The translations under genes and the position numbers were made by a program. A DNA stretch of 64,000 nt, from positions 124,001 through 188,000 of the IMG/VR virus record IMGVR_UViG_3300020202_000001, one strand, 5' to 3'. This document shows positions 12,744-54,802 of this stretch, piece by piece. The notes under the pieces are model-generated. The model saw only the letters and a program-made list of their open reading frames with translations. It had not been told where the DNA came from and did no database searches. Within the stretch, counting starts at the first letter, position 1. Each line of letters begins with the position of its first letter.

Positions 12744-12757
12744 CCTTGGCTCACAAA

Positions 12758-25748: not shown

Positions 25749-27278
25749 ATGAAGCAACACGTCCGAATCACGCAGGCCACGCAAGAGGGGACGATCCAGA
25801 CCGCCGAGGGCGTCCTCGACTTCGCCTCGGGCCAGGTCGCCCTCGACTTCGAGATGGCGGTCAACGCGGGGATGACCTACCGCATCCACCTGAACGACGA
25901 GAAGCCCGCCAAGACCGGCAAGGAGGACCACCTCCGGGCCGCCGTCGAGAACGCCGCCGCGATCAGCGACTACTTCCACTGCCAGAAGGAGCGGTTCCAG
26001 CGGTTCTACGACGAGCACGCCGACGCGCTCTCCGGGTTCCCCGGGATCTGGAAGCTGTGCGGCGACGCCGGCATCGCGCTGGCGATCGCCGAGCGGAAGC
26101 TCAAGATCGAGTGGGGCGAGGACGCCGAGTGGATCGACACGGTCCAGGCGTTCTCGCACCGCGTCATGTACCCGCAGCACGTCGAGGGGCTGCCCGCCCA
26201 CGAGTACCAAGGCGGCAACCACGACGACAAGTTCCTCCTCGCCCTGGCGGTGCGGACGATCGAGGACGCGAAGGCCGGGAAGCTCGACGGGTACTGGGAC
26301 ACCGACGAGGCGAACAAGTCGGGCGACGTCGCCGCCGACCACCCCGAGGAGCTGGACTCGGCCGAGCGGGCCGACCAGCAGCGACAGGTCGAAAAGTTCA
26401 CCCCGGCCGTGAAGCCCGGCCCGGACGACCCGTGCCCGGGCTGCTCGTACTGCGAGGGCTTGGGCGGGGACAAGCACGCGACCGGGCAGGCGGCCGCCCG
26501 GTGCCCCCGCTGTGGCGGCAAGGCCACGCCGGTCGACGTCGGCGCGGCGGTCGTGTTCAACGCCCGCCGACTCGTCCTGCTGATCCTCCGGCGGGCCGAC
26601 GTGCCGAGCACGTACGCGGGGCAGTGGGTGCTGCCGGGCGGCAAGGCGGACACGCTCGAATCCGTCAGCGACGCCGCCGTACGCGAGCTGAAGGAGGAGA
26701 CGGGCGTCGTCGCGTACGCGACCGGGCGGCTGGAGCGTACGACGCTCACGCCGGACGGCCGCCACCGCCGGCACTGGATTACCTGCCACCTCGACCCCGA
26801 CAGCCCGCAGGCGGAGAACAAGGAGCCGGAGAAGCACGAGCGTGTGTACTGGTTCAACCCGACCGCCCTGCCGGAGAACATGTCGGAGGACGACCGGCAG
26901 GCGATCCTCTACCTGACCGGGCCGATTACCCCCGGCCACCCGTACGCCGTCATCAACGCCGAGCCGGTGACGGCCAAGGCGCTCGTCATCACCCTGTTGG
27001 CGACCGTCTCCCTCGACGCGACCGAGGAGGAGCTGGCGAAGCTCACCCCGGACGAGCGGTGGGAGGCGGCGAACTGGGCGATGGCGAGCAGCCTGAGCGC
27101 GAGCGACAACGACGACGTCGTGGTGCCGCCCAAGCCGGCGTGCCTCGACAAGATCAAGGAGTGCCCCCAGCCGTGGGATCAACCAACACCGAGCAGCTCC
27201 GCAGCGCCTCCCGCATCAACACCGGACGGGTCACCAAGCCCGCCACCGTCGACGTCCCCGGACCCGTCGAACAGCTGA
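25749..27278 (+). CDS. multidomain protein with zinc ribbon and Nudix hydrolase domain
   Basis: Nudix box GQWVLPGGKADTLESVSDAAVRELKEETG; NKEPEKH..VYWF; CPGC..CPRC. Confidence 0.85.
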   Translation: MKQHVRITQATQEGTIQTAEGVLDFASGQVALDFEMAVNAGMTYRIHLNDEKPAKTGKEDHLRAAVENAAAISDYFHCQKERFQRFYDEHADALSGFPGIWKLCGDAGIALAIAERKLKIEWGEDAEWIDTVQAFSHRVMYPQHVEGLPAHEYQGGNHDDKFLLALAVRTIEDAKAGKLDGYWDTDEANKSGDVAADHPEELDSAERADQQRQVEKFTPAVKPGPDDPCPGCSYCEGLGGDKHATGQAAARCPRCGGKATPVDVGAAVVFNARRLVLLILRRADVPSTYAGQWVLPGGKADTLESVSDAAVRELKEETGVVAYATGRLERTTLTPDGRHRRHWITCHLDPDSPQAENKEPEKHERVYWFNPTALPENMSEDDRQAILYLTGPITPGHPYAVINAEPVTAKALVITLLATVSLDATEEELAKLTPDERWEAANWAMASSLSASDNDDVVVPPKPACLDKIKECPQPWDQPTPSSSAAPPASTPDGSPSPPPSTSPDPSNS

Positions 27279-27688: not shown

Positions 27689-28306
27689 ATGGCTAAGAAG
27701 ATCAAGATCGAGAAGACGAGCAACAAGAAGAGCACCGTGCACGGCGTGCAGGTCACGATCGGCGGCATCCTGTTCGTGCCCGCCGGCAAGAAGACCTGGC
27801 CCACCCGCACGCACCGCGACCGCGCCGTCGAGAAGGTCGTGCAGGCGGTCATCGGGGCCAAGCCGCTCGACCTCGTGACGAAGGACCTGAACCCGCCGGC
27901 CCCGCTCAAGCCGCTCGGCAAGAGCAAGCCGGCGGCGAAGAAGGCCGCCGCCCCGGCCCCGAAGGCGGTCGGCACGAAGAGCGGCCGCGTCTCGGCGGCG
28001 AAGCCGAACAAGGCCAACAAGCCGAAGCGGTTGACGAAGGCCCAGGTCGCCGCGAACCCGGACCAGCCCTCGATCGACGCGGCCAACTCCGTCGACATCG
28101 ACGCGCTCGACACGGACGACGAGGCGGTGCCCAGCCCGGCCACCGACGCGGCGGCCGACGCCGCCGACGCGGCTGCCGCCGACGACGACACGCCGGACGG
28201 TGCCGCGCAGGCGATCGCCGAGGAGCAGGGCGAGCCCGAGGGCGAGCCGCTCGACGACCTCTCCGGCCCGAACGACGACGCCTCGAAGATGCCCGACGAG
28301 GCGTAG
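27689..28306 (+). CDS. Lys/Ala-rich protein with acidic tail (possible nucleoid-associated protein)
   Basis: AAGGA RBS; KPAAKKAAAPAPK then Asp/Ala-rich C-terminus. Confidence 0.7.
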   Translation: MAKKIKIEKTSNKKSTVHGVQVTIGGILFVPAGKKTWPTRTHRDRAVEKVVQAVIGAKPLDLVTKDLNPPAPLKPLGKSKPAAKKAAAPAPKAVGTKSGRVSAAKPNKANKPKRLTKAQVAANPDQPSIDAANSVDIDALDTDDEAVPSPATDAAADAADAAAADDDTPDGAAQAIAEEQGEPEGEPLDDLSGPNDDASKMPDEA

Positions 28307-28310
28307 GCCG

Positions 28311-28340
28311 TTGACGCGGTCCCCCGTCCGGGGGTAGTCT
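28311..28340 (+). promoter_or_regulatory. sigma70-like promoter
   Basis: TTGACG-18 nt-TAGTCT. Confidence 0.5.
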
Positions 28341-28383
28341 TCCACAACTCATACACCGGCCGAGCCGGGAAAAGGACGATGCA

Positions 28384-28659
28384 GTGGCAACCAAGTTCAA
28401 GGTCGAGATGCACACGACGCGGGCGAAGCAACCCTTCAACGCGCGCGTGATGAAGGGCGGCAAGGAGATCTGGCGGACGAGCGAGGGCTACGAGAAGCGT
28501 GGCCCCCGCGACAAGGCCGCGAAGGAGCTGGTCGACGCGATCAACTCCGGCAGCCTGGCGACCGCCAAGCTCGTCGACCTCAACCCGCCGGAGCTGGGCA
28601 AGGCCCCGGCCGCCGGCAAGGCGACGACGAAGACGAAGGCCGCCGCCGCCTCGGCCTGA
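28384..28659 (+). CDS. YegP/DUF1508-like protein
   Basis: FNARVMKGGKEIWRTSEGYEKR..RDKA signature; AAAGGA RBS. Confidence 0.65.
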   Translation: MATKFKVEMHTTRAKQPFNARVMKGGKEIWRTSEGYEKRGPRDKAAKELVDAINSGSLATAKLVDLNPPELGKAPAAGKATTKTKAAAASA

Positions 28660-28705
28660 CCCAACGGCTGCCGCCGCTTTCCCCGGCCCAGCCCCGCGAC
28701 TCGAT

Positions 28706-28746
28706 ACGCCCGGCCGGGACCCGTACCCGGCCGGGCGTGTCATTTT
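28706..28746 (+). terminator. intrinsic terminator
   Basis: ACGCCCGGCCGGG-ACCCGTA-CCCGGCCGGGCGT followed by GTCATTTT. Confidence 0.65.
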
Positions 28747-28750
28747 CACC

Positions 28751-29119
28751 ATGGCAAAGAAACCCCCGCGAAGGGTCACGTTCTGGGGCCGCAAGAAGGA
28801 CCCCGACGAGGACTTCAACAAGCCGCCGCCGAGCAAGGCGGACGCGCTCAAGCAGTGTGCCCGGATCAAGAAGAAGATCCAGGACGCCCCCAAGAAGGTG
28901 TGGGACAAGGCGTTCAAGTTCTTCGAGGACATCGACCAGAAGGCCAGCGAGATCGCCGACTCGATCAAGTCGAACGGCAGCGTCAGCGAGGGGCAGAAGA
29001 AGGCCCTCGACGGCTGGGAACGCGGCGTCGACAAGTGGATCGCCAACAACAAGCCGGCCGAGCCCGCAGAGGGCGACGAGGACGGCGAGGACGACGACGA
29101 AGAAGGCGACGAAGAGTAA
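28751..29119 (+). CDS. hypothetical protein
   Basis: Typical codons; TAATG coupling to next gene. Confidence 0.7.
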   Translation: MAKKPPRRVTFWGRKKDPDEDFNKPPPSKADALKQCARIKKKIQDAPKKVWDKAFKFFEDIDQKASEIADSIKSNGSVSEGQKKALDGWERGVDKWIANNKPAEPAEGDEDGEDDDEEGDEE

Positions 29120-33297: not shown

Positions 33298-33744
33298 ATG
33301 GCCAAGCGACGCAAGCGAAAGCAGAGGAACCGCGTCGTCGGTGCCCGCCCCGCCGGCCCGGACCACCAGGTGGTCACGATCACGGGCCAAGGCGAGGCGG
33401 GGTATTGCACCCGGCCGTGCCCGCAGTGCCCGTGGCGGAAGGACCAGGCCGGGAGCTTCCCGGCCGAGGCCTTCCGCCACTCGGCGAACACGGCGTACGA
33501 CATGGACCAGCACACGTTCGCCTGTCACATGGCGGGCGTCGAGAACCCGAAGATCTGTGCCGGCTTCCTCCTCAACGGCGCTGCACACAACATGACGATC
33601 CGCCTGGCCGTGATCCGGGACGAGATCGACTTGGACAAGGTCACGGACGGCGGGCACGAGCTGCACGAGAGCTACCGCGCCATGGCCGAGGCGAACGGGG
33701 TGCCGCCGGACGACCCGGCGCTCGCCCCCTGCAGGGAACCATGA
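33298..33744 (+). CDS. DUF6283-like Cys/His protein
   Basis: PCPQCPWRKD..G.FPAEAF, FACH, ICAGFL, LHESYRAMA.ANGV. Confidence 0.7.
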   Translation: MAKRRKRKQRNRVVGARPAGPDHQVVTITGQGEAGYCTRPCPQCPWRKDQAGSFPAEAFRHSANTAYDMDQHTFACHMAGVENPKICAGFLLNGAAHNMTIRLAVIRDEIDLDKVTDGGHELHESYRAMAEANGVPPDDPALAPCREP

Positions 33745-35309: not shown

Positions 35310-36434
35310 ATGCCCAAACCCATCCTGTCCATGTCGGCTGACTGGCACCTGCAGAACCGGGCGTGGACGCTCGCTGCGGGTCGTGACATCAGCGGCGACA
35401 GCTACTACTCCCTGAAGCAGATCGTCGACCACGCCATCGAGCACGAGGTGCAGGCGGTGGTCGGCGCTGGCGACCTGATCGACAAGACGATCAACAACTC
35501 CGACCCGATCGTGTTCCTCAACCAGCAGCTCGACCGGCTCCAGAAGAAGGAGATCCGGTGCCTGTACGTGCAGGGCCAGCACGAGATGCAGGACCGCCCC
35601 TGGCTCAGCGGCCACGCCTGGCCCGAGCACATGAGCGGCCTGCAGGTGACGATCGACACCGTCTGCATGTTCGGTCTCGACTTCCACCACAGCCCCCAGC
35701 TCCAGATCGCCCTGAACGCGATCCCGGAGGGCACGCACCTGCTCGTGGCCCACCAGGTGTGGGGCGAGTTCATGGGGTCGGTCGCGGCCCCGCAGGGCGG
35801 GATGTCGGACGTGCCGATGGTGGGCACCGTGTTCACCGGCGACTACCACGTCCGCAAGGAGATCGAGACGCGGGGCAAGGACGGCCAGAAGCTCCGCGTG
35901 ATCTCGCCCGGGTCGACGTGCATGCAGAGCATCGACGAGCCGTGGAAGAAGTTCTTCTACGTCGTCTACGACGACTACACCTGGAAGAAGGTGCGGCTCA
36001 AGACCCGCCACCGCGTCGACTGGCACGTCAGCGCGGCGGCCGACGTCGACAACCTGCTGCAGACGGTCGACACCGAGCTGACGCGGATCGCCGACGAGAC
36101 GGCCGGGTACGACGAGCGGGTCCGCAAGCCGATCTACTGGGTCGAGTACCCGCACAAGCTGGGCGAGCACCGGGGCCGGATCGTGAAAGCGATCGGCGAC
36201 CGGGCGTTCATCTTCTGGAAGGAAGTGCCGCCGGAGCCCCCGCCGGAGGTCGTGGCCCGCCGCAAGGAGGCCCAGGCCAAGGGCGAGCGGCGGGCGGCCA
36301 CGCTGCTGACCGAACTGCCCGGCTACCTGCAACAGGCGGAGCTGGGCCACCTGCAAGGCGACTGCACGCGGCTCCTGCAAGCCGGCAGCGTCGAGGACGA
36401 GCTTCGTCGCATGCGAGAGGAAGCGCTGAAATAG
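35310..36434 (+). CDS. sbcD: SbcD/Mre11-like metallophosphoesterase nuclease
   Basis: ADWHL, GAGDLID, QGQHE, VAHQ, TGDYH, SPGS motifs; AAGGAG RBS. Confidence 0.88.
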   Translation: MPKPILSMSADWHLQNRAWTLAAGRDISGDSYYSLKQIVDHAIEHEVQAVVGAGDLIDKTINNSDPIVFLNQQLDRLQKKEIRCLYVQGQHEMQDRPWLSGHAWPEHMSGLQVTIDTVCMFGLDFHHSPQLQIALNAIPEGTHLLVAHQVWGEFMGSVAAPQGGMSDVPMVGTVFTGDYHVRKEIETRGKDGQKLRVISPGSTCMQSIDEPWKKFFYVVYDDYTWKKVRLKTRHRVDWHVSAAADVDNLLQTVDTELTRIADETAGYDERVRKPIYWVEYPHKLGEHRGRIVKAIGDRAFIFWKEVPPEPPPEVVARRKEAQAKGERRAATLLTELPGYLQQAELGHLQGDCTRLLQAGSVEDELRRMREEALK

Positions 36435-36733
36435 TGGCTAGACCTGACCCCGAGGCGATCGAACAAGACCCGCGGTTCGCAAAAATCCTGGACGCCGGCC
36501 ACGGCATACCGAGCAGCGACTCGGAGCTGGGGAGCCGGGCGATCGCGGACATGATCGACTGGTGGCGGCGCTGTTACGCCGGCGGCGAGCAACTCGGAAA
36601 CATGCTCGACGACGTCGACCAGCTCGTTTGCATACTCAACAAGTTCAAAGCCGCCGTCGCCAAGGACCACTCCCTGGTGATCGACGACTCGCCGTTGCGG
36701 CGGCACGCCGCACTGGGACCGAACGACGGATGA
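36434..36733 (+). CDS. hypothetical protein
   Basis: TAGTG coupling. Confidence 0.55.
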   Translation: MARPDPEAIEQDPRFAKILDAGHGIPSSDSELGSRAIADMIDWWRRCYAGGEQLGNMLDDVDQLVCILNKFKAAVAKDHSLVIDDSPLRRHAALGPNDG

Positions 36734-37068
36734 AGCTACGCATCGAGATCGACCTTGACAACGACGCCTTCGCCGGCCGCAAGCTCGCCCGCGAGGTCGA
36801 GAAGATCCTCGACCTCCTCCCGTCCGACCTGGACGGGGTGGGGCGGCGGCAGCTGGCGACGTTCTCCAAGACGCTGATGGACAGCAACGGCAACTCGGTC
36901 GGAAAGGCCGTGGTCGTCGACGACGAGGTCACGCCCCGTTGTGCCAAGTGCACGACGAAGCTGACGGAGTCGACCCCGACGATGACGGTCTGCTCGAACG
37001 ACACCGCCCGCAGCCTGCGCGTCGAGATCGGCGACGTGGTCTGCAAGGCGTGCTACGACCGGGCCTGA
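36730..37068 (+). CDS. hypothetical protein (IDLDNDAF..DSNGNSVG family) with C-terminal CxxC pairs
   Basis: ATGA coupling; common small phage protein motif. Confidence 0.65.
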   Translation: MKLRIEIDLDNDAFAGRKLAREVEKILDLLPSDLDGVGRRQLATFSKTLMDSNGNSVGKAVVVDDEVTPRCAKCTTKLTESTPTMTVCSNDTARSLRVEIGDVVCKACYDRA

Positions 37069-37075
37069 GGTAACT

Positions 37076-39247
37076 ATGTGGATCAAGCGAGCGCTCTTCA
37101 GGAACATCGGCCGCCACCGCGAGCTGGACATCTACTTCCAGCGCGGGCTGGTGGGGATCTTCGGCCCGAACGGGTGGGGCAAGTCCACGATCGTCGACGG
37201 GATCTACGCCTGCCTGACGAACGACTGGAGCCGGTTCGCCGGCGTGAAACTCGACAACATCCGCGACACGGCCGACCCCGATGAGGAGTCGAGCATCACG
37301 GTCTGGGGCGAGCACGGGGACGTGCCGTTCGAGGTGTTCCGCCGCCTCCGCCGGGCCGAGAGCGAGAAGCGGAAGAAGGGCCTCCGCAAGGACAACGAGC
37401 TGATCGTCGACGGTAAGACGTTCGACAAGGACGAGGACATCAGGCGTGAGCTGACGGTACGCCTCGGCGTCAACCACAAGCTGATCGGCACGCACGTCTT
37501 CGTGGCCCAGCGGGAGATGTTCCGGTTCGTCTCCGACACCCCGGGCGACCGGGCGGCGACGTTCCAGATGCTCTGCGGGACCGAGAAGGCCAAGCAGATC
37601 GTCGACGCGATCGAGGCCCTGCTGGAGCAGGACAAGGAGCTGCTGGTCGTCGTCGACGACAACAGCGACGAGATCAACGCCCGCATCGGCGGCCGGGCGG
37701 TCGAGCTGCAGGCGGCCAAGGAGGAGCTGGCGGCCGCCACGGCGCTGCTGCTGCCCAAGAAGCGGCGGCTACTTTCAAAAACCGTTATTGAGAAGCGGCA
37801 GGCCTGGCGGCGGGCGGTCAAGGCGATCACGGCCCTGAAGCCGACGATCGTCGCGAGGAAGAAGGAGGTGTCGTCGGCGGAGCTGAAGTACACGGTGACG
37901 TCCACGGAGCTGAACGCCCTCGCCGCCGCCTTCAAGCGGGACAAGCCGCTGGCAGAGGAGGCTCGGGCCACGCTGAAGCGGATCACCGAGTACAACGAGC
38001 GACAGGAGGTGCAGGGCAACATCGAGCGGCGGCTGGCCGACGCCCGGACGAAGGTGAAGGAGCTGGGCGACCGCCCGCCCCTCCACGCGTCGGACGACAA
38101 CCGCGAGCGCCTCGTCGAGGAGCGGGGCACGCTGCGGGTGGAGTACCGGGAGAACAAGACGCTCCTGACCACGTTCGCGATCGAGGGCGTGGTGAAGTGC
38201 CCGACGTGCGGCACGAGCGTCCGGGACCTCGACGAGCACCTGCGGCTCGTGAAGGTCAAGCAGCCCAGGCTCAAGGCGCGGGGGCTGAAGCTCGCCAACT
38301 TGATCGAGGCGATCGACGCGGCCCGCGCGGCCCGGGAGGCGTACGACAAGGAGCGGCGGAAGGCGGACGCGAAGGTCTCGGAGTACGAGGCCCTGCTGAA
38401 GCACGCCAAGGTGAGCGATCCGCCGAAGGGCGACGCCAAGGCTCTGCAGCGGGTGGTCGACGACTTCGATGCGTTGGAGAAGAAGTACGACAAGGCCCGG
38501 CAGGTGAACGGCGATGCCGTCACCGCCGTGTCCACGGCCAAGGCCCGGCACGACGCCGTGGTCCAGCAGCGGGCGGACCTCCGGGTCGAGCGCGACGGCA
38601 ACGTCGTGACCGACGAGGAGCTGGAGCGTGCCAAGAAGCGGATGGCCCGCCACGAGGCGGCCAAGGTCAACGTCGCCGCCCTCAAGCAGAAGGTCGAGGG
38701 GATCGAGGCGGCCCAGGCCCAGGACGTCGAGGAGCTGGAGCGGCTCAAGGCGAAGCTGGCCAAGAACAAGAAGGCCCACCAGTTCGCGGCGAAGCTCAAG
38801 AAGATCGCCGAGGTCATGCACCGGCAGGCCCTGCCGCAGATGGTGGCCCAGTCGAACCTCCAGGACATGGAGGGCGACATCAACAAGATCCTCGACATGT
38901 TCGGCAGCCCGTTCTGGGTCGAGACGGCGGAGGACCTGACCTTCACCGTCCACTTCCCGGGCGAGCCGCCGCGCAACGCCCAGCGGCTCAGCGTCGGGCA
39001 GAAGGGCGTGCTCGCGATGGCGTTCCGCCCCGCGATCTCCGCCCTGTTCGACGCCGAGATCGGCATGATGACGCTGGACGAGCCGACCGCCGACATGGAC
39101 GAGCGGAACCGCGGGTTCATGGCCGCGGCGCTGGCCCAGTACGCGGCCCAGGTCCGGGGCCGCCGGCAGGTGATCGTCATCACCCACGCGAACGAGCTGC
39201 GGCAGTCGTTCGACCAGGTTGTGGAGCTAGGTGCACATGGCAACTGA
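37076..39247 (+). CDS. sbcC: SbcC/Rad50-like SMC ATPase
   Basis: Walker A GPNGWGKST, Q-loop FVAQ, zinc hook CPTC between coiled coils, signature LSVGQK, Walker B TLDEPT, H-loop VITH. Confidence 0.92.
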   Translation: MWIKRALFRNIGRHRELDIYFQRGLVGIFGPNGWGKSTIVDGIYACLTNDWSRFAGVKLDNIRDTADPDEESSITVWGEHGDVPFEVFRRLRRAESEKRKKGLRKDNELIVDGKTFDKDEDIRRELTVRLGVNHKLIGTHVFVAQREMFRFVSDTPGDRAATFQMLCGTEKAKQIVDAIEALLEQDKELLVVVDDNSDEINARIGGRAVELQAAKEELAAATALLLPKKRRLLSKTVIEKRQAWRRAVKAITALKPTIVARKKEVSSAELKYTVTSTELNALAAAFKRDKPLAEEARATLKRITEYNERQEVQGNIERRLADARTKVKELGDRPPLHASDDNRERLVEERGTLRVEYRENKTLLTTFAIEGVVKCPTCGTSVRDLDEHLRLVKVKQPRLKARGLKLANLIEAIDAARAAREAYDKERRKADAKVSEYEALLKHAKVSDPPKGDAKALQRVVDDFDALEKKYDKARQVNGDAVTAVSTAKARHDAVVQQRADLRVERDGNVVTDEELERAKKRMARHEAAKVNVAALKQKVEGIEAAQAQDVEELERLKAKLAKNKKAHQFAAKLKKIAEVMHRQALPQMVAQSNLQDMEGDINKILDMFGSPFWVETAEDLTFTVHFPGEPPRNAQRLSVGQKGVLAMAFRPAISALFDAEIGMMTLDEPTADMDERNRGFMAAALAQYAAQVRGRRQVIVITHANELRQSFDQVVELGAHGN
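37774..37793 (+). repeat. dispersed 20-bp site, copy 7, intragenic (TTCAAAAACCGTTATTGAGA)
   Basis: 18/20 match to copy 1 inside the sbcC coiled coil; run of rare A/T-ending codons. Confidence 0.8.
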
Positions 39248-40196
39248 GTGTCTCCGATTGCAAGTCTCGCCCGAGGGACAGGTGTGGTTCGGCGACGACC
39301 GCGAGGTCGCCGTCAACTCACGCCTGTCCCCCGAGGCGTTCGTCGCCGGCGAGCGGTTCCACGACGCGAAGCTGGTGCGGTTCCTCGGCCGGGCGGACAA
39401 CGCCGTCCTGGTCGAGGCCGTGCACCAGCACAAGGCCCGGCTGGACCCGACGCAGCGGCTGTCGCTGCCGAAGGTCCAGATCGGGAGCCCGCAGATGGCG
39501 CTGGGCAAGCGGCCCGGCGACGTGCTGCCGGGCCTGTGGCACGCCTGTGTCAGCTCCGACGTGTTCGCCAGCTGGTACGAGCTGGCGGACGCGGACTACG
39601 TCGTCTACTCGCTGGTCGCGGCCGTGCGGGCCAACGGCGGGCGGCCGGACGACAAGGCGCGGCGGATCATGTACTACCACCCGGCGTGGCCGGCGATGAG
39701 CTTCACGCCCGCCTACGACATCGACGCGTGCTGCGTGACGCTCGCGACGATCGTGGACGTGCGGTGGTTCACGCACCCGGCCAAGCCACACCGCCCGAGC
39801 AAGCTGTGGACGTACCTCGGGCTGACGCCGGAGAACGCCCGGGCGGTCTGCGGGGGCAAGCAGTACGGCGGCCACCACTACGACCGGGCGCGGACGGCGA
39901 TGCGGGCGTGGCTCGGCTTCGACCCGCTCGTCTCGCACATGCTCGAAGGGAGCCTGGCCGAGAGCGGCCCGGCGTTCCTGCGACGCATCTGCGCGACGAC
40001 GGAGGAGCGGAGCAAGGGCCTCCTGCTGGCGACGCGGAAGTACGTCCAGTTCTTCCGCGACGTGTGGGCGGCGGAGCGGTCGCAGGGCCGCCAGGCGTTC
40101 GAGCCCGAGATGTTTTTCAACACGACCGACGAGGTCACGGCGTACCGCTTACACCGGCAAACGCTGCACACGCCCGCCGAGGGCGGGCCGATTTGA
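39237..40196 (+). CDS. degenerate IS110-transposase/Nop-domain-like protein
   Basis: HPAWPAMSFTP..ACCVTLATIVDVRWF..PSKLWTYLGLTP matches the IS110 C-terminal motif (L.sipG....aa.llaeigdi.rF....kl.syaGL.P); N-terminus follows RuvC-like spacing (KVQIGSP) without the DEDD acids; overlaps sbcC stop. Confidence 0.6.
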   Translation: MATECLRLQVSPEGQVWFGDDREVAVNSRLSPEAFVAGERFHDAKLVRFLGRADNAVLVEAVHQHKARLDPTQRLSLPKVQIGSPQMALGKRPGDVLPGLWHACVSSDVFASWYELADADYVVYSLVAAVRANGGRPDDKARRIMYYHPAWPAMSFTPAYDIDACCVTLATIVDVRWFTHPAKPHRPSKLWTYLGLTPENARAVCGGKQYGGHHYDRARTAMRAWLGFDPLVSHMLEGSLAESGPAFLRRICATTEERSKGLLLATRKYVQFFRDVWAAERSQGRQAFEPEMFFNTTDEVTAYRLHRQTLHTPAEGGPI

Positions 40197-40221
40197 CGCC
40201 CCTCTAACACGGCTGTAACAT
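40193..40221 (+). promoter_or_regulatory. sigma70-like promoter of the RAMP-like gene
   Basis: TTGACG-17 nt-TAACAT. Confidence 0.65.
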
Positions 40222-40284
40222 GCTGTCGCGAATGGCATCGCGCACGGAACGCGCGGTTCGGCGGCACAGCCAAGGACGGCTGGA

Positions 40285-40815
40285 GTGCGAGAACTAACTG
40301 TCAGGATCAGGTTCACGAAGCACTGCCTCGGCAGGGTGCTTGACCGGTCGGCGGCGGACGGGCGAATGGTCTTCGCCCGCACCCCGGACGCCCACGTCAT
40401 GTTCCCCGCGAGCTGGCATGCCTCGAACATGGTCCTCGCGGCGAAGTTGCTCGGGCGGCATCAGGGCTCGGTACGCAAGATCCTCTGGGACCCCGAAGTG
40501 GACTGCGTGACCCGGCCCGACCGGTGGTTCAAGCGGTACTACACCGGCAGGGACAACAAGCGACGCTTCGCGGTACACGAGGCGTTCTTCCCCGGCCAGG
40601 TGGTGGGCCTGAACTGTGCGGTCCCGTCCGAGGTGTCCGACGACGACCTCGTGCAGCTGATGAACATCGCCGGCCGGTACAAGGGCCTGAGCCCGTGGGA
40701 CCCCGGCGAGTACGGACAGTTCCAGGTGGAGTCGATCGCGTTGCGACGAGGGCCGGCAATCCCTCCCGCCGCGACACAGAAGGAGAGCGAACAACAGTCA
40801 AACGTCAGCGCATAA
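40285..40815 (+). CDS. stand-alone RAMP (Cas7/Csm3-like RRM) protein
   Basis: Beta1 LTVRIRFTKHCLG, F.R....VMFPAS..LAA, HEAFFPGQVVGLNC, and terminal Gly-rich loop LMNIAGRYKGLSPWDPGEYGQFQV. Confidence 0.65.
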   Translation: MRELTVRIRFTKHCLGRVLDRSAADGRMVFARTPDAHVMFPASWHASNMVLAAKLLGRHQGSVRKILWDPEVDCVTRPDRWFKRYYTGRDNKRRFAVHEAFFPGQVVGLNCAVPSEVSDDDLVQLMNIAGRYKGLSPWDPGEYGQFQVESIALRRGPAIPPAATQKESEQQSNVSA

Positions 40816-40819
40816 AGAA

Positions 40820-40853
40820 GGCCTTCGACCGGCATCGAAGGCCCTCTCGTTCT
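40820..40853 (+). terminator. hairpin after the RAMP gene
   Basis: GGCCTTCGA-CCGGCA-TCGAAGGCC followed by CTCTCGTTCT. Confidence 0.55.
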
Positions 40854-40923
40854 AGGAGGTAGCTACCCCTGCGGGCGTCCACCGAAGGTTTCCAACGCCC
40901 ACATCATAGCGCCCTCCTGAACG
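40848..40923 (+). ncRNA. candidate structured RNA (long stem with internal loops)
   Basis: Nested pairings CGTTC/GAACG, AGGAGG/CCTCCT, GCTA/TAGC, GGGCGT/ACGCCC, ACC-GAA-GGT. Confidence 0.35.
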
Positions 40924-41003
40924 CAATGCAATACGAGTCAAGCCCCCGCGTGCGCGAAAAACGCCGTGCCGGGTCTCCGCGTCCAGGTTGAGGGCACTAC
41001 GCA

Positions 41004-42548
41004 ATGGCAGAAAAACCGCAGATAACGCTGCTCAAGAGCGGCAACCGGCTGGTCGTCGCCCCTACCCCGACGCAGGTCAGGGAGGTGCTCGAAACGAAGC
41101 TGAGCTTCACCGCGAAGCACATGCTCTACGGTGCCGAGCGGTTCGAGGAAGGCAACAAGGGCAAGCGGTTAGAGCTGATCGACTACCAGTGCTACTTCCT
41201 CGATCACAAGAACCGCATCGCGACCAGCCTCGGCTTTTACCACCGCATCACCAAGGCCCTGAAGGCCCGCGGCTACCCGGTCAGGATTAAGGACCTGACG
41301 CCCCCGGCAAAGCCTGAGATCTTCGTCCCCCGCTGGAACCGCGTTCTCGGCCCCGACTCCGGCATCAAGCTGCGGCACGGGCAGAAGGAGTTCCTGGAGT
41401 GGTTCGTCGCCCAGGTGCAGGCCGGGCTCCCCGGCCGCGCCGACGCCCCGCCCGGCTACGGCAAGAGCTTCCTGATCGGCCTCGCGGCCATGCTCTTCCC
41501 GAAGGCCAAGATCCACTACACGTCCAAGCGGGCCAGCGTCATGCGGGACCGCATCTTCCCCGAGCTGTGCGGGATGCTCCCCGACGTCGGCCTGGTCGGC
41601 GGCGGGGTGCGGAAGGCCGGCTGTCGCGTGCAGGGGTACACGTTCGACTCGCTCCACCACAGCGACGGCAAGTGCGACATCCTCTTCACCGACGAGTGCC
41701 ACGAGGCGGCGGCGGACGACGCGGCCGAGCAGCTGGCGAAGTACGACGAGAGCCTGAACTACGGGTTCAGCGCCACGCAGGACATGCGGATCGACAACAA
41801 GGACCTCCGCGTCGAGGCCATGTTCGGGCCGGTCGGCTACAAGATGACGTACCAGACCGCCGTGAAGCACGGGCTCGTCGTGCCGCTCGAAGTGCGGTGG
41901 CGGAACGTGCGGATGGACATGGACCCGTGCGAGGGGATCGAGGACTCGGTCGAGCGTAAGCGGTGGGGCATCTGGCGGAACCGCCACCGCAACCAGCTGA
42001 TCGCCAAGGACGCGCGGAGCCACCCGGACCAGCAGGTGCTCGTCACCTGCGAGACGATCGAGCACGCGCTGGCCCTGAAGCGCGAGATGCCCGAGTTCAC
42101 GCTCGTGTACGCCGCGCGGGACATCTCGTTCGAGAAGCGACGCTACTTCCGCAAGCTGGGCCTGTGGCCGAAGAAGGGCCTCAAGCAGATGACGGAGGAG
42201 CGCAAGCAGAAGCTCACCCGCCTGTTCGAGCGGGGCAAGCTGCGGAAGGTGATCGTCACGACCGTCTGGAACGTCGGCGTGTCGATGAACCACCTCGAAG
42301 TCCTGGTGCGGGCCGACGCCGGCGGCAGCCCGATCATGGACACGCAGATCCCCGGCCGCGTCAGCCGCACGAACAAGGCGATCGGCAAGAAGCAGGGCGT
42401 CATCTACGACTACAAGGACCAGTTCAACTCCGGCTTCAAACGGAAGAGCGGCAGCCGCCGCTCCAGCTACGTCGGCAACGGCTGGACCCAGGTCGACCCA
42501 GGCACGAAACCCGGCGAGAAACTGCAGCACCGGCTGTGGGAGGATTGA
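41004..42548 (+). CDS. superfamily 2 DExH helicase (UvsW/XPB-like)
   Basis: APPGYGKS, FTDECH, FSAT, TTVWNVGVS, QIPGRVSR, IYDYKD. Confidence 0.9.
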   Translation: MAEKPQITLLKSGNRLVVAPTPTQVREVLETKLSFTAKHMLYGAERFEEGNKGKRLELIDYQCYFLDHKNRIATSLGFYHRITKALKARGYPVRIKDLTPPAKPEIFVPRWNRVLGPDSGIKLRHGQKEFLEWFVAQVQAGLPGRADAPPGYGKSFLIGLAAMLFPKAKIHYTSKRASVMRDRIFPELCGMLPDVGLVGGGVRKAGCRVQGYTFDSLHHSDGKCDILFTDECHEAAADDAAEQLAKYDESLNYGFSATQDMRIDNKDLRVEAMFGPVGYKMTYQTAVKHGLVVPLEVRWRNVRMDMDPCEGIEDSVERKRWGIWRNRHRNQLIAKDARSHPDQQVLVTCETIEHALALKREMPEFTLVYAARDISFEKRRYFRKLGLWPKKGLKQMTEERKQKLTRLFERGKLRKVIVTTVWNVGVSMNHLEVLVRADAGGSPIMDTQIPGRVSRTNKAIGKKQGVIYDYKDQFNSGFKRKSGSRRSSYVGNGWTQVDPGTKPGEKLQHRLWED

Positions 42549-42551
42549 CCC

Positions 42552-43370
42552 GTGGAGGCAACCTTGAAACGACGCAGGCGGGCCGGCGGCGCTGACCGCG
42601 GCCTGGAACAACTGGCGACGCTGCTGCTGCGCACCTGGCAGGTGGAGCTGCAGCGTTACCTGAGCATGGGCCGCGAGCCCGACGACGTCGCCGACCCCGA
42701 CGACGTCGTCCGCCACCTGACCGACACGTCGGGGGCGAGGCGGCAGCGGCGGATCGACAACCTGACGGAGAACATCGAGCTGGCCCCGGCCCGCGCCCGG
42801 GTCGACCGGTCGACGAGCCTGTGGATGGACGTCGCCCGGATCGTGGTGCGGAACCGGTTCGACCCGGAGCGGTTCGTGCGGCGGCAGTTCGCCGTGCTGT
42901 CGCCCCGGATGCCGACCGAGAAGCGCAGCCGGCTCCCGCAGCCGGAAATGCTCAAGAGCGAGCGGGCGATCAAGAACTACAAGGCCGGGCACGGCGTCTC
43001 GATCACTGAGATCCAGGCCGCCTTCAAGTCGCAGCTCTCCCGGTTCAAGGTGCAGGTCGCGGTCCTCGGGCAGTCGCGGTTCTACAACCTCGACAGCGAG
43101 GGGACGTGGATCGCGGTGCTGACCAACGAGGAGGAGCCGCTGTCGGCGCTGTTCCGGTACTGCACCGCCCGCCGCATCCTCAAGCAGGCGGGGCTCAAGC
43201 AGCGGGCGAAGTTCAAGGAGATCGCGGCCACCTACCGGACGGCGGCGGCGATCCAGTACGTCTTCGAGGCGGACGAGTACGACGAGATCTGGAAGGACCA
43301 CCTGCCCGAGGGCTGGTCCGAGAAGGCCCAACGTATCTACCGCAGCTTTTACGGCTTCAACGACGAGTGA
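42552..43370 (+). CDS. hypothetical protein in replication block
   Basis: GGAGG RBS; typical codons. Confidence 0.7.
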   Translation: MEATLKRRRRAGGADRGLEQLATLLLRTWQVELQRYLSMGREPDDVADPDDVVRHLTDTSGARRQRRIDNLTENIELAPARARVDRSTSLWMDVARIVVRNRFDPERFVRRQFAVLSPRMPTEKRSRLPQPEMLKSERAIKNYKAGHGVSITEIQAAFKSQLSRFKVQVAVLGQSRFYNLDSEGTWIAVLTNEEEPLSALFRYCTARRILKQAGLKQRAKFKEIAATYRTAAAIQYVFEADEYDEIWKDHLPEGWSEKAQRIYRSFYGFNDE

Positions 43371-43384
43371 AGGAGCACGCGACC

Positions 43385-45061
43385 ATGCCCAAGCAGAGCG
43401 ACAAGAAGAAGCGGAAAGAGGGTCAGTTCGAGGACATGAAGCGGCGGCCGGCGCTCGACCAGCGGAAGAAGGAGCTGATGATGGCCGTCCTCCTCCGCAA
43501 CGAGGACGCCTTCAAGGCCACCCGGGAGATCCTCAAGCCCGAGCACTTCGGGGAGTTCGACCGCGGGTACAAGGTCGCGTGGGCGTTGGCCAACGAGTTC
43601 TACGACGAGCACGAGGCCCTGCCCGGCTTCGAGTTCCTGATGGCGGAGATCGAGGGGGCCAGCGAGGCCAACCCGAACCTGTTCAACGACGCCGAGTACG
43701 ACAAGCTCTCGTCGTTCATCGAGTACGCGTTCGACAAGGACAGCTTCGAGGCGGACATCACCCAGGACCGCGCCAGCGCGGACTGGGGCATCAAGACGGC
43801 GAAGAAGTTTCTCGACGAGCGGCTCGCCGCCAAGATGAAGGAGGTCATCCAGTCCAAGGACATGCTCCCGGCGAACCTGCCGGAGTTCATGAACCAGATG
43901 GCCGCCGAGGCGGAGCAGATCGCGTCCGTCTCTACCGAGGTCGACTTCGACCCGTTCCCCGACGACTGGCACAAGACCGCCAGCATCAAGGTCTTCTCCA
44001 CCGGCATCCCGTTCTTCGACGAGTTCCTCGGCGGCGGCCACGCGCCGGGCGAGGTGTACGGGCTGATGGGGCCGTACGGGTCGTGCAAGACGACGATCGC
44101 GTCGATGCTGATCGTCGAGGCGGCCAAGGCGTTCTACCAGGAGCACCTGCTCGACCCGAGCCAGCCGCCCAAGCTGGCCGTGATCGCCTGCTACGAGGCC
44201 CGCAAGCCGGAAATGCGGAACCGGACGCTCGGGTACGCCGCGATGATCCGCCGGGCGACGATGGAGGCGATGGCCCCGGACAAGCCGCTGGAGCTGGCCG
44301 GGTTCTCGACCTCCGACAAGCTGAAGAAGTACGAGAAGCGGATCTGGCGGGCGAAGATCAACAACGGCGAGAAGGTGGCCGGGGAGCTGGAACGCGTCAT
44401 GGACGCGCTGACCTACCTCCGCCGGCACATGGTCGTGCTGGACATGACCGGCCACGAGACGAAGGGCGTGGGCAACGGCGGGATCAAGGAGGTCTCGCAG
44501 ATGATCTCCAACGTCTGCCGCCAGCGGAAGGCCAAGTGCGGCCTGTTCGTGATGGACTACGTCGGCGCGATGGTGAAGCGGTACATGGGCGGCAACGACG
44601 TCGAGACGAGCGAGCTGCGGCACCTGATCGGCGGGGCTCCCCTGACGATCAAGAGCCAGATCGGCGACGTGTTCGACTGCCCCTCGTACGCCCTCCACCA
44701 GCTCGCCGGCGAGGCCAACAGCTTCGGGTCGGCCGTCCTGGCCGACCACACGAACGCGGCGGAGTCGAAGAGCTTCGCGGAGAACCTCGACTTCAGCTTC
44801 TCGATCAGCAAGCCGCAGGACCCCGACGCGGTCGCGCTGTTCGGCTGCACGAAGCACCGCCGCCAGCCGGGGCGGATGAACACGATCATCAAGATCGACG
44901 GCGGGCTCAATCGCGTGTTGTCGGCCGACGACAAGTACATGATTAACACCCACGCCCGGAAGATCATGCTGATCGCCGACGTCAACAAGCTGCCCGAGAA
45001 CTCGGCGATCAAGAAGAACAGCGCCGCGGCCGGCGGCGGGTCGGCGTCCAGCCTGGACTAG
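43385..45061 (+). CDS. dnaB: DnaB-like (SF4) replicative helicase
   Basis: ILKPEHF N-terminal motif, STGIPFFDEFLGGG..PGEVYGLMGPYGSCKT, FVMDY, LHQL, AESKSF, TKHR; AAGGAG RBS. Confidence 0.85.
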   Translation: MPKQSDKKKRKEGQFEDMKRRPALDQRKKELMMAVLLRNEDAFKATREILKPEHFGEFDRGYKVAWALANEFYDEHEALPGFEFLMAEIEGASEANPNLFNDAEYDKLSSFIEYAFDKDSFEADITQDRASADWGIKTAKKFLDERLAAKMKEVIQSKDMLPANLPEFMNQMAAEAEQIASVSTEVDFDPFPDDWHKTASIKVFSTGIPFFDEFLGGGHAPGEVYGLMGPYGSCKTTIASMLIVEAAKAFYQEHLLDPSQPPKLAVIACYEARKPEMRNRTLGYAAMIRRATMEAMAPDKPLELAGFSTSDKLKKYEKRIWRAKINNGEKVAGELERVMDALTYLRRHMVVLDMTGHETKGVGNGGIKEVSQMISNVCRQRKAKCGLFVMDYVGAMVKRYMGGNDVETSELRHLIGGAPLTIKSQIGDVFDCPSYALHQLAGEANSFGSAVLADHTNAAESKSFAENLDFSFSISKPQDPDAVALFGCTKHRRQPGRMNTIIKIDGGLNRVLSADDKYMINTHARKIMLIADVNKLPENSAIKKNSAAAGGGSASSLD

Positions 45062-45066
45062 GAACT

Positions 45067-46134
45067 ATGTCGGAACCCCTGAACCCAGCGCTCTACCGCA
45101 ACCTGAAGAGGGTCTTCGGCAAGGTGGTGATCTCGAACGAGGGCGTCGCCTTCGTCGGTCGCTACGTGCCGAAGATCGTCGAGGAGGGCGAGGAACTCTA
45201 CATCGAGAACTCGGGCGAGTATTACCGGGTGAACTGCAACAAGTGCAGCGACACCCGGCACCGCCTGTACATCAACCACCGGTGGGCGAAGCGGGACGAG
45301 AAGGGCCGGCGGAACCTGTGGATGGCCGTCTGCTACAACGACCCCACCTGCTACTCCGACCAGGAATCCCGCGAGGAGCTGTACAACCGGCTGAGCGAGA
45401 TCCGGGGCGTGCTGGAGGAGGCGAAGATCAAGCAGGGCGTCGTCCGCAAGGAGGCGTCGATCGTCGACCCGCCCGGCCCGATCATCACGCTCGACAAGCT
45501 GCCGCCGAACCACCCCGCCAACGTCTACCTCGCCGACCGGTACTTCGACCCCGAGCTGCTCGGGCGGACGTACGGCGTCGGGCTGGTGACGAACTCGATG
45601 TACTACCTCGCCCGCGACCGCATCTACTTCCCGATCGTCCAGGACGGGAAGCTGCGGGGCTGGCAGTGCCGGTACGCCGGGGAGCTGGACTGGAAGGACA
45701 AGTCCAACCCGCCGAAGAGCTTCAACTGCCCGGACATGATGCGGGGCCACCTGCTGTACGGCCTCGACCAGGCGAAGCGCTACCAGACCGGGGTCCTCGT
45801 CGAGGGGCCGACGTCGCGGCTCAACTTCGGGCCGATGGCGATGGCCTCGCTCGGGTTCCCGATCACGAACAACCAGTCCCGCTTGGTCGTGCCGCACTTC
45901 AAGGACCACTCGATGGTCATGCTGTTCGACCCCGACGTGCTGGAGAGCCCGTCGATGAAGCGGAAGTACGACCAGGTGTACGACGAGCTGAAGGACCAGT
46001 TTCGACACGGGCTCGCGGCGGTCGCGCTGCCCAAGCCTTACGACCCGGCCGACCTCGATCGGTACTGGGTCCGGGAGTACGTCCGCCGCGAGGCCAAGGC
46101 CCAAGGGGTCAAGGTGCGGTGGGAGAAACGGTGA
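45067..46134 (+). CDS. dnaG: DnaG-like DNA primase
   Basis: CNKC..H..C zinc finger, YLADR, RIYFPI..G.LRGWQCR, LYGLD, TOPRIM LVEGP, FDPD, DPAD. Confidence 0.85.
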   Translation: MSEPLNPALYRNLKRVFGKVVISNEGVAFVGRYVPKIVEEGEELYIENSGEYYRVNCNKCSDTRHRLYINHRWAKRDEKGRRNLWMAVCYNDPTCYSDQESREELYNRLSEIRGVLEEAKIKQGVVRKEASIVDPPGPIITLDKLPPNHPANVYLADRYFDPELLGRTYGVGLVTNSMYYLARDRIYFPIVQDGKLRGWQCRYAGELDWKDKSNPPKSFNCPDMMRGHLLYGLDQAKRYQTGVLVEGPTSRLNFGPMAMASLGFPITNNQSRLVVPHFKDHSMVMLFDPDVLESPSMKRKYDQVYDELKDQFRHGLAAVALPKPYDPADLDRYWVREYVRREAKAQGVKVRWEKR

Positions 46135-53266: not shown

Positions 53267-54802
53267 ATGCCGAAACAGGAACGCAAGGCACGGAAGCCGG
53301 TCCCCGTCGCGAAGCGACAGCCCCGCGACGAGGACGACGGCGAGGAGACGAAGGCCGCGAAGCCGGCCGCCAAGCCGGCAGCCTCGGAGAAGGCCACCGG
53401 GTCCGCCCCCGGCACGCTCAAGCGCCGCTTGAAGCCCCGGGAGGACCCCACCGGCGCGAGCACCGGTCCGAACGACCGTGTTCACGCCCCGCGGCCCGTC
53501 CACAGCCTCGACAACCGGGACCTCTCCAAGATCCCCAAGAAGGGCAAGCAGCGCCTCGCCGAGTGGCGGGGCCAGAACCACGGCAAGAAGCTCGACAAGT
53601 ACATGCAGGGCATGATGAGTGCCTCGCGTCGAAAGTTCGGCCACAACGCCGTGTTCGCGGGGCACACCGACGAGAACATGATCGTCGGCATCCCGTGCCC
53701 GCTCGCCTTCGAGTACCTGCTCTGCCAGGACGTCTTCCCCCTCGGCCTCATCTACCAGATCGTCGGTCTGGCGGGCTCGCTCAAGAGTTCGCTGATCTAC
53801 GAGATCATGCGCTGGTTCCGCAACGCCGGCGGCGGCTCGCACCTTGAGGAGGTGGAGACGAAGTTCTCCCCAGAACTCATGCGGTCGATCGTCGGGTACG
53901 CGGAGGACGAGACGAACGTCATCGTCGACCGGTGCGACTCGGTCGAGGACTGGCAGCGGAAACTGCTCTACAACATCGACCAGCAGAAGGAGCTGCTGAC
54001 CTGGGAGGACAAGGCCAACAAGATCCCGGGTCCGGGTCGAACGGTGCCCATCTGCTTCGCGGTCGACAGCGTCAGCGGCAAGCTGAGCATGGAGACGCAG
54101 GAGAAGGTCAACGACCAGGGCTTCCACGGCCGGTCGTTCCCGATCGAGGCGATGAGCATCACCGGGTTCATGAAGACCGTGCCCCAGATGATCGACGGGT
54201 GGCCGTTCGCGCTGGTGCTGAACAACCACCTGAAGATGGGCAAGGACGACCAGGGCCACGACGTCCGGCGGATCACCGGCGGCGCGGGCCTGAACTTCCA
54301 GGAGTCGTTCGAGCTGGAGACGAAGGTCCGCAAGTCGAAGATCGAGTGCTCCGAGTGGGAGGGCATCCAGATCGGCATCCGCTGCACGAAGAACTCGTTC
54401 GGCCCCACGCACCGCCGCATCGACGCACGCATGCTGTGGTGGGAGGAGATGAACGAGGAGACGGGCGACTACGACCAGATCACCCGCTGGGACTGGCACT
54501 GGTCCACCGTGCAGCTGCTGACCGGCGAGAACATGCTGAGCGCCATGATCCGGGCTCGGCTGAAGGAAGCCGGCGTCCACGTCGACGCGCCGAAGAAGGC
54601 CGACGTGGAGAACCTCGCGTGGAGCAAGAACCTCGGCATGAAGAAGGAAGACGCCGTGCCGTGGAGCGAACTCGGCGCGATGATCGCCAAGGACACCGTT
54701 CTGTTGAACACCATCAGGCAGTGCCTCGGCATCAAGCGCCGCCCGCTCCTGCAGGGCGACTACCTCCAGCAACTGGAAGGGCTGCGAGAGCAGCTCCCGT
54801 GA
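53267..54802 (+). CDS. recA: RecA/UvsX-like recombinase with basic N-terminal extension
   Basis: FPLGLIYQIVGLAGSLKSS (Walker A), EVETK, AVDSVS (Walker B), VLNNHLK, TGGAGLNF, CTKNSFGP. Confidence 0.85.
   Translation: MPKQERKARKPVPVAKRQPRDEDDGEETKAAKPAAKPAASEKATGSAPGTLKRRLKPREDPTGASTGPNDRVHAPRPVHSLDNRDLSKIPKKGKQRLAEWRGQNHGKKLDKYMQGMMSASRRKFGHNAVFAGHTDENMIVGIPCPLAFEYLLCQDVFPLGLIYQIVGLAGSLKSSLIYEIMRWFRNAGGGSHLEEVETKFSPELMRSIVGYAEDETNVIVDRCDSVEDWQRKLLYNIDQQKELLTWEDKANKIPGPGRTVPICFAVDSVSGKLSMETQEKVNDQGFHGRSFPIEAMSITGFMKTVPQMIDGWPFALVLNNHLKMGKDDQGHDVRRITGGAGLNFQESFELETKVRKSKIECSEWEGIQIGIRCTKNSFGPTHRRIDARMLWWEEMNEETGDYDQITRWDWHWSTVQLLTGENMLSAMIRARLKEAGVHVDAPKKADVENLAWSKNLGMKKEDAVPWSELGAMIAKDTVLLNTIRQCLGIKRRPLLQGDYLQQLEGLREQLP

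Follow-up and report, generated by a model that had tools for sequence, protein, structure and literature searches.

A predicted Cas7-type RAMP related to viral Vipr proteins and its orphan-fold neighbour in the replication-recombination block of a clade of large phages

VIPR systems combine a stand-alone viral RAMP of ~20 kDa (Vipr), an accessory gene (vap) and vrRNAs (10.64898/2026.04.26.720920). A vrRNA consists of 9-16 YNNGG repeats and a structured tail, the system serves guide-directed DNA binding and silencing between phages, and seven types are distinguished, with helicase or nuclease vap genes in types III-V (10.64898/2026.04.26.720920). In the Vipr of SUSP1, the GGY readers seen by cryo-EM are H17, R138, D177, W178 and R179, of which D177 and R138 are essential (10.64898/2026.04.26.720927). 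The VIPR papers also report solo vrRNAs located away from vipr that are able to redirect a rival's Vipr, as well as alternative repeat consensuses. Descriptions of stand-alone viral RAMPs date only from 2026, and in all of them a pentanucleotide guide array accompanies the RAMP. Here we describe a locus of the uncultured phage contig IMGVR_UViG_3300020202_000001 (224,418 bp), of which we analysed a stretch of 64,000 nt (contig positions 124,001 to 188,000; hereafter the window, to which all other coordinates refer). We are highly confident in the joint conclusion that this stretch carries a co-oriented gene string, part of the replication-recombination block found in a deep clade of large uncultured phages, that one gene product (Y) is a Cas7-type RAMP homologous to Vipr, and that its neighbour (X) is unrelated to it and is not an IS110 or Nop protein.

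The gene string and the helicase gene that follows it comprise the following features.

35310-36434, plus strand: sbcD, Mre11-like nuclease subunit (Pfam Metallophos, NCBIfam Mre11/SbcD; G+C content at third codon positions, GC3, 0.92)
36434-37068, plus strand: two short reading frames in the sbcD-sbcC interval (codon-position GC changes frame twice)
37076-39247, plus strand: sbcC, Rad50-like ATPase subunit (SMC_N at 2e-15, AAA_23, SbcC_Walker_B; phrog_77 at 1e-39)
39237-40196, plus strand: X, 319 aa (GC3 0.95; 11-nt overlap with the sbcC stop)
40285-40815, plus strand: Y, 176 aa, predicted stand-alone Cas7-type RAMP (AlphaFold2 model, Foldseek and profile comparison)
41004-42548, plus strand: SF2 helicase, UvsW/XPB-like (Helicase_C, ResIII; phrog_16 at 1e-28)

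The G+C content of the window is 68%, and raw lists of open reading frames (ORFs) are crowded for this reason; codon-position GC singled out one string of plus-strand genes with GC3 values of 0.86-0.96. The gene order and coordinates given by an initial annotation, made from the sequence alone, held for sbcD, the small ORFs, sbcC, X, Y and the SF2 helicase. The sbcD gene starts with an ATG preceded by GAAGGAG and was found in nearly all related loci. The ORF at 36562-37068 yielded weak matches only in the family libraries, and relatives have one or two ORFs at the same place. Weak matches of the SF2 helicase to XPB and EcoAI-R were also obtained, and its gene is followed by a 272-aa ORF (p272) and by genes for a DnaB-like helicase, a primase and a UDG-PolA fusion. 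As predicted from the sequence, sbcD, sbcC, X and Y constitute one co-oriented string with a terminator-like hairpin after Y, and they are presumably transcribed as one unit.

About 100 homologues of Y were found, none of them annotated and many on contigs of 100-235 kb. The AlphaFold2 model of Y, built with the family alignment, had a pLDDT of 92.4 and comprised beta1, a beta hairpin, alpha1, four strands, alpha2, a loop rich in glycine (the G-loop) and beta4. Foldseek comparison with the PDB returned 101 matches at E <=1e-3, the best 50 of which were all Cas7 backbone subunits (Csm3, Cmr4 and type VII Cas7), with E values from 1e-6, a probability of 1.00 and TM scores of 0.5-0.6. The initial annotation had read Y as a stand-alone Cas7-like RAMP, and the fold comparison bears this out. 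The protein consists of a basic core of ~154 aa and a disordered tail; across the family, the mean net charge of the core is +7.4, and the tail is 10-45 residues long and mildly acidic.

A sequence profile search of the PDB with Y returned one weak match, the SUSP1 Vipr protein 36pp_D; the C-terminal stretch matched there is also the part over which 15 of 38 Y family members matched phrog_4652. In SUSP1 (KT454805), vipr (28474-29061) and vap1 (28031-28471) both lie on the minus strand. Profile alignment (hhalign) of Y with type II Vipr gave a probability of 89% that was confined to the alpha2 / G-loop / beta4 element. As a control set, we scanned IMG/VR for (GGYNN)x7 and obtained at least 120 loci with true arrays; more than 40 of the 120 array-bearing loci listed encode Vipr beside the array. 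Against 26 divergent Viprs from these loci, the hhalign probability of Y rose to 96.4% (E 1.3e-9, 117 columns), and against a Vipr set including that of SUSP1 it was 93.5% over 155 columns. The Y profile matched 13 ORFs in the 120 array loci, and all 13 are Viprs. Given these scores and the 13 of 13 matches, Y is a distant Vipr homologue, and model and profiles together identify it as a minimal RAMP of the Cas7 type that shares homology with the Vipr proteins of viruses. The control loci also provided an observation in its own right: more than 120 viral contigs in IMG/VR (L049-L217) carry perfect (GGYNN)x10 tracts, often several and mostly beside a Vipr ORF, so that canonical VIPR is abundant in this database.

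The residues that read GGY in SUSP1 Vipr correspond to the following positions in the Y family.

SUSP1 H17: N or R, not conserved
SUSP1 R138: a gap (ambiguous)
SUSP1 D177: invariant Pro137, preceded by invariant Ser136
SUSP1 W178: Trp138, mostly kept
SUSP1 R179: a variable residue

The insert of ~40 residues that follows beta1 in Vipr is missing from Y. Conversely, the Y-specific invariant residues E3, H98, E99, S136 and P137, together with R94, which is nearly invariant, lack a counterpart in Vipr and may constitute a novel site of binding or catalysis.

To search for guide RNA genes, we scanned for period-5 tracts with the patterns YNNGG, NNNGG, YNNNG and NNNNG (period-5 G). All four SUSP1 vrRNAs were recovered in the control scan, with 6-8 of 8 units in phase. 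In none of the sequences scanned did a tract exceed the shuffled null; these were the 64-kb window, contig positions 114018-197458 (83 kb), 28 loci selected by Y (12-16.5 kb each, ~6-8 kb on either side of Y) and 78 loci selected by the helicase. Y therefore fails the defining RNA feature of VIPR, an array nearby. X adjoins Y, yet it matched no ORF in the 120 array-bearing VIPR loci listed. Other traces of CRISPR were also sought. Tandem Repeats Finder (TRF) detected no CRISPR-like array in the 64-kb window, no Rfam family was found there, and no Cas protein was recognised among the ORFs compared with protein family libraries (~38 of the ~70 in the window). The initial annotation had described the window as free of CRISPR arrays and of cas1 and cas2; the former statement stands, and the latter holds for the ORFs so compared. 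Since no RNA partner was found, its description of the locus as RNA-guided remains conjecture.

The distribution of X and Y was analysed in a Y-selected set (35 IMG/VR loci and several metagenome contigs) and in a set of 78 loci selected by the helicase, 71 of them informative, which was chosen to remove ascertainment bias. The order sbcD-sbcC-X-Y-helicase-p272-DnaB-primase-PolA was kept across G+C contents of 38-67% in the Y-selected loci, and loci selected by X had the same gene order; the SbcCD-helicase set thus proved to be a conserved block in related phage contigs. The X and Y genes frequently overlap or have only 2 nt between them, and the gene arrangement often predicts translational coupling of the pair. 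Among the 71 informative helicase-selected loci, 54 contained both genes, 11 contained X alone and 6 contained neither, one of the latter having a 325-aa ORF in the place of X. Where Y is missing it has no replacement, and X abuts the helicase gene. Y without X was encountered at one Y-selected locus (L022). The linkage of the two genes proposed at the outset is therefore real in that they adjoin each other in most relatives, but they are separable, as the 11 loci with X alone and the single locus with Y alone show. X is a more constant partner of sbcC than Y.

The slot between sbcC and the helicase gene was observed in four states of occupancy, including X only (L220, L238, L244, L248, L256, L259, L275 and L280), Y only (L022) and neither (L237); in these loci, no other gene takes the vacant positions. 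In one relative, an HNH ORF (PF13392; L045:3916-4221) is inserted between Y and the helicase gene and probably encodes a homing endonuclease.

The helicase tree implies at least 9 changes between presence and absence of Y, of which well-supported branches force at least 6, and 3 such changes for X. Between pairs of loci, the identities of Y and of the helicase rise and fall together (Spearman 0.77). The median pairwise identities are 37% for Y, 38% for the helicase and 28% for X, which evolves faster. Conservation of Y equals that of the helicase and is therefore unlike that of an arms-race gene. Together, the helicase tree and the identity data indicate that Y is an old, vertically inherited, slowly evolving and dispensable resident of the block. 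A role of Y as the only single-stranded DNA-binding protein (SSB) of the phage was considered and is unlikely, as Y has been lost repeatedly.

Genes in the position of X belong to one family, because their products all begin with a common 'LRLHTDxDGxVW' motif. An exhaustive profile search extended this family to 1096 clusters at 50% identity; the best 150 of these clusters all belong to the same full-length family, and for this reason we found no link to an annotated family. A word-indexed homology search with X returned only X itself. In the AlphaFold2 model of X (pLDDT 90.7, pTM 0.90), a small N-terminal part is alpha/beta and the C-terminal part is helical. Foldseek found nothing significant for X in the PDB, the best match being Cas1 (E 0.095, TM 0.16); the Cas1 rows at the top of the list (E >=0.095, TM 0.12-0.16) were rejected as noise. 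IS621, Nop5 and Tas were not among the best 50 PDB fold matches, and BFVD contained no match.

X had been taken in the initial annotation for a dead IS110/Nop protein, and every comparison bearing on this was negative or insignificant. None of 27 family members matched Pfam Transposase_20 or DEDD_Tnp_IS110 at E values up to 1, none matched Pfam Nop, and a profile search of PDB sequences with X did not find IS621. Eight of the 27 members matched phrog_4285 'transposase' weakly, over residues 143-220; the true IS110 transposase IS4321 falls in phrog_2199, not phrog_4285. When the X profile was aligned with IS4321 by hhalign, X 165-203 paired with IS4321 223-255 at a probability of 0.1% (E 0.52), the IS110 proteins collected from plasmids being near-identical IS4321/IS5075 copies and not a diverse IS110 profile. 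This segment is exactly the motif that had drawn attention to IS110, a helix-hairpin-helix-like motif, 'DPRW ... RLxxYLGLxP', at residues ~172-205 of X. The invariant residues of X are mostly aromatic, with no evident catalytic set; we found no invariant acidic residue in the N-terminal part of X and no conserved Ser after 'LGLxP'. There was no sign of bridge RNA, TIGR or box C/D RNA, the window being without arrays (TRF) and without Rfam families. The absence of insertion sequence (IS) ends, as first noted, was upheld: X overlaps the sbcC stop, and there is no room for IS ends around it. Judged by these models and profiles, X is a protein of unmatched fold, without an evident catalytic motif, that is tied to sbcC and is not a relative of IS110 or Nop.

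The intergenic DNA on either side of Y was analysed for signals and structure, with the following results.

40193-40221, plus strand: sigma70-like promoter match, TTGACG-17-TAACAT, 9/12 (shuffles yield 0.1 such matches)
40816-41003, plus strand: Y-helicase spacer of 188 nt (folding z = -2.2; 5/200 shuffles equally stable)
40820-40843, plus strand: terminator-like hairpin of 9 bp, just past the Y stop codon (fold prediction)

The promoter postulated by the initial annotation is present as a match in this phage but is not conserved, as in most relatives the gap between X and Y is <=20 nt or the genes overlap. The leader and the spacer, claimed to be structured, were only slightly more stable than shuffled sequences. 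The leader (40222-40284) had a folding z of only -1.7, 10 of 200 shuffles being equally stable, and neither the leader nor the spacer is conserved in relatives. The spacer contains hairpins and a promoter-like motif, its stability is largely due to the 9-bp hairpin, and it had no Rfam match and no pentanucleotide repeats. In 17 of 45 non-redundant loci with X and Y, the Y-helicase spacer is <=30 nt, and it is therefore not a conserved RNA gene. In the equivalent hairpin of relatives, 10 of 12 pairs carry compensatory changes; such covariation fits a terminator. An RNA gene in the spacer was accordingly rejected on three grounds: absence in 17/45 loci, no period-5 signal and the terminator-like character of the covarying hairpin. 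GT-rich tracts after Y in some relatives were also considered as degenerate vrRNAs and rejected; the period-5 scans were at chance level, close relatives showed no period-5 variation, and the spacer is absent in 17/45 loci.

The post-Y hairpin with 10 of 12 compensatory pairs and a conserved loop was observed in L014, L019, L021-L026 and L028. In the same loci, inspection by eye revealed a conserved 'GTGTAGCGG' following it, then a second hairpin with apparently covarying stems and, after that, a '-10-like' TTCTA/TTGTA motif. The post-Y hairpins and the -10-like motif may be a clade-specific terminator-promoter cassette.

Cas7 proteins hold single strands by the backbone and show no preference for sequence, and Vipr is a Cas7 core to which a GGY-reading head has been added. 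Our preferred, though tentative, interpretation is that Y binds single strands on replication or recombination intermediates, either guide-free or with generic RNA, and that X is a DNA-binding adaptor coupled to SbcC; these functions are ones that we infer. Y would have lost the GGY-repeat-reading head of Vipr, would have no dedicated guide array, and would have retained the generic single-strand grip of Cas7 (G-loop, thumb and RRM face). It would assist recombination-dependent replication as an accessory factor that the phage can dispense with, and might cover or grasp single strands of RNA or DNA in R-loops, D-loops or resected ends, intermediates that the flanking SbcCD nuclease and UvsW-like helicase would produce and remodel. 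X would contact DNA through its helix-hairpin-helix-like motif. We favour a guide-free or generic-RNA role because Y has a Cas7 core with a basic surface, a mostly lost GGY head and no nearby array, and because it sits between SbcCD, which resects ends, and a helicase of the type that remodels branches or R-loops, within a T4-like set for recombination-dependent replication, and evolves in the manner of a housekeeping accessory and not of a weapon.

Several points weigh against this interpretation. To our knowledge, all characterised relatives of Y (Vipr and Cas7) use a dedicated guide RNA. The scans covered 37% of the 224-kb contig and ~11-12 kb per relative, so that remote guide genes are possible, and they were G-based, so that repeats of a code not based on G would escape them. 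The invariant E3, H98 and E99 hint at an activity that we are unable to assign. Y has been lost at least 6-9 times and is therefore not an essential part of the replisome, and a conflict gene could show the same patchy presence. Among the window ORFs scanned (~38 of ~70), we recognised no SSB, mediator or loader; with this coverage and a window of 64 of 224 kb, the absence of an SSB is weak evidence.

It is possible, if doubtful, that Y belongs instead to a non-canonical VIPR system, in which it would act on a guide RNA in DNA binding or silencing, the guides would be remote or written in a code that is not G-anchored, and X, the helicase or the nuclease would serve as vap. Y is homologous to Vipr along most of its length and retains the G-loop Trp that corresponds to W178, and the repeated loss of Y suits an accessory weapon; moreover, only 37% of the contig was scanned. 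The two-gene layout with a putative accessory protein recalls VIPR, whose published features include solo vrRNAs, variant repeat consensuses and, in types III-V, vap genes for a helicase or nuclease. However, no YNNGG, NNNGG, YNNNG or NNNNG tract above chance was found in ~100 loci, to a distance of ~6 kb on each side of Y or the helicase, or in 83 kb of the contig, the essential D177 is an invariant Pro in Y, and H17 is not conserved. Furthermore, X had no match in the 120 true-array loci, and Y evolves slowly and vertically at one fixed site.

Many RAMPs are RNases, and Y might resemble Cas6, Csm3 or Cmr4 in cutting RNA, with E3, H98 and E99 (and R94) acting on primers or R-loops during replication. 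The three invariant residues are absent from Vipr, and no RNase H or FEN was recognised among the window ORFs scanned (~38 of ~70), as would suit such an enzyme; these residues, however, bear no similarity to known RAMP active sites, and Vipr itself is not a nuclease. We regard a ribonuclease role as improbable.

A decoy function, in which a guide-less Y would bind or mis-assemble on the vrRNAs of competing phages or satellites and so disarm them, appears very unlikely. Conflict over VIPR components is documented, including solo vrRNAs that redirect a rival's Vipr, and Y has no arrays of its own; but the residues that would read GGY in a foreign vrRNA are mostly replaced, Y evolves slowly and vertically, and it is seated in a replication block. 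The ribonucleoprotein first proposed, formed by a dead IS110/Nop-like X and a Cas7-like Y with RNAs from the leader and downstream spacer, is scarcely credible: Y is indeed a RAMP, X and Y are adjacent in most loci, and 'DPRW ... RLxxYLGLxP' recalls the IS110 Tnp domain alongside the eight weak phrog_4285 matches, but Pfam, PDB profiles, Foldseek and hhalign gave no IS110/Nop signal, IS4321 itself lies in phrog_2199, the leader and spacer are absent in many relatives, and 11 loci have X only and one Y only.

Around the gene string, the window encodes further proteins.

10809-12815, minus strand: gpA-type large terminase, upstream of the sbcD block
25749-27278: NUDIX-domain protein
33298-33744: DUF6283 protein
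43106-45061: DnaB-like helicase, longest ORF, overlapping the preceding 272-aa gene by 264 nt
45067-46134: DNA primase (phrog_47, 2e-17)
53267-54802: UvsX-like recombinase, downstream of PolA
61658-62731: ThyX, downstream

The true start of the DnaB-like helicase is probably near 43400, because its relatives are ~545 aa long. The terminase, primase, DnaB-like helicase, UDG-PolA fusion, UvsX-like recombinase and ThyX identify the contig as that of a phage, and, by family assignment, SbcCD, the SF2 helicase, the UvsX-like recombinase, the primase and the DnaB-like helicase make up a T4-like recombination-replication toolkit. A tblastn search of 50,697 GenBank phages gave no match for X, Y or the SF2 helicase, a nucleotide search of GenBank phages gave none for the locus, and PolA is <=30% identical to that of T5-like and other GenBank phages; these searches indicate that the locus has no cultured relative among GenBank phages. 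A separate observation concerns a 717-aa ORF (51018-53171) between PolA and the UvsX-like recombinase, which contains ~900 nt of GAC-/AAG-rich repeats encoding poly-Asp and KKPA-like low-complexity sequence, has a local AT skew of 0.49 and had no Pfam or PHROG match.

The initial annotation knew of no described system with this pairing. For the RAMP half this is outdated, as VIPR consists of a stand-alone viral RAMP and an accessory gene (10.64898/2026.04.26.720920), and since that report dates from April 2026, the Y locus does not represent a new kind of system. In their accessible part, the VIPR papers describe no Vipr relative that lacks arrays or resides in a replication-recombination block. 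Among Vipr relatives, the Y family forms a deep clade that evolves slowly and is distinguished by the lack of a nearby array, by a rebuilt G-loop and by a fixed seat between SbcCD and a UvsW-like helicase. Conceivably, although we would not presume it, this family is either the first RAMP to have moved from RNA-guided conflict into a virus's own replication and recombination or an eighth VIPR type with a non-GGY code; in either case, Y would work with X, an orphan-fold SbcCD partner of more than 1000 sequence clusters. Such a finding would widen the known roles of Cas7-like filaments and bear on the proposed viral origin of CRISPR RAMPs. With the Y family, one can test directly whether a Cas7-like protein is able to act, for instance on intermediates of replication or recombination, when it has no dedicated guide, or whether there are other RNA codes. 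X merits attention in its own right, being confidently folded, coupled to SbcC, present in more than 1000 clusters and without structural relatives in the PDB or BFVD; phage nucleases of the Mre11-Rad50 type may have in it a cofactor that has escaped recognition.

Among known systems, VIPR is comparable in that Y is a virus-encoded, stand-alone RAMP of ~20 kDa that lies away from CRISPR and has an adjacent gene that may be an accessory, and in the profile-profile homology over ~120-155 columns, with a common alpha2 / G-loop / beta4 signature. The Y locus differs from VIPR in having no tandem pentanucleotide RNA beside the gene or within 83 kb, in a G-loop that reads 'GLSPW' where Vipr has 'GxGDW/YRP', with most GGY contacts replaced, and in the additional invariants E3, H98-E99 and S136-P137 and the missing ~40-residue insert after beta1. 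Furthermore, X is unrelated to the ORFs of the 120 canonical loci, and Y is fixed in a replication-recombination block in which it is inherited vertically and evolves slowly. The Cas7 proteins of class 1 CRISPR systems (Csm3, Cmr4 and type VII) are the best structural matches of Y (Foldseek E 1e-6 to 1e-4); however, identity is 9-14%, Y is smaller and matches no PADLOC Cas model, its neighbours are replication genes, and neither an array (TRF) nor another cas gene was found. With IS110/IS621 and the Nop proteins (TIGR-Tas, Nop5), X shares only the short helix-hairpin-helix-like motif at the site of the IS110 Tnp 'GD..RF ... YaGLvP'; it has no DEDD RuvC domain, no conserved Ser after the motif and no Pfam, profile or fold match, and its locus has no IS ends and no bridge or TIGR RNA.

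In T4, the set for recombination-dependent replication consists of gp46/47 (SbcCD-like), UvsW, UvsX and gp41/61. We know of no T4-like phage that carries a RAMP or an X-like gene at the SbcCD-helicase site. The genes around X and Y resemble this set in kind, comprising SbcCD, an SF2 helicase, a DnaB-like helicase, a primase, PolA and a UvsX-like recombinase. The locus likewise resembles those of SbcCD and Mre11-Rad50, the genes for a metallophosphoesterase subunit and an SMC-like ATPase subunit being neighbours within it.

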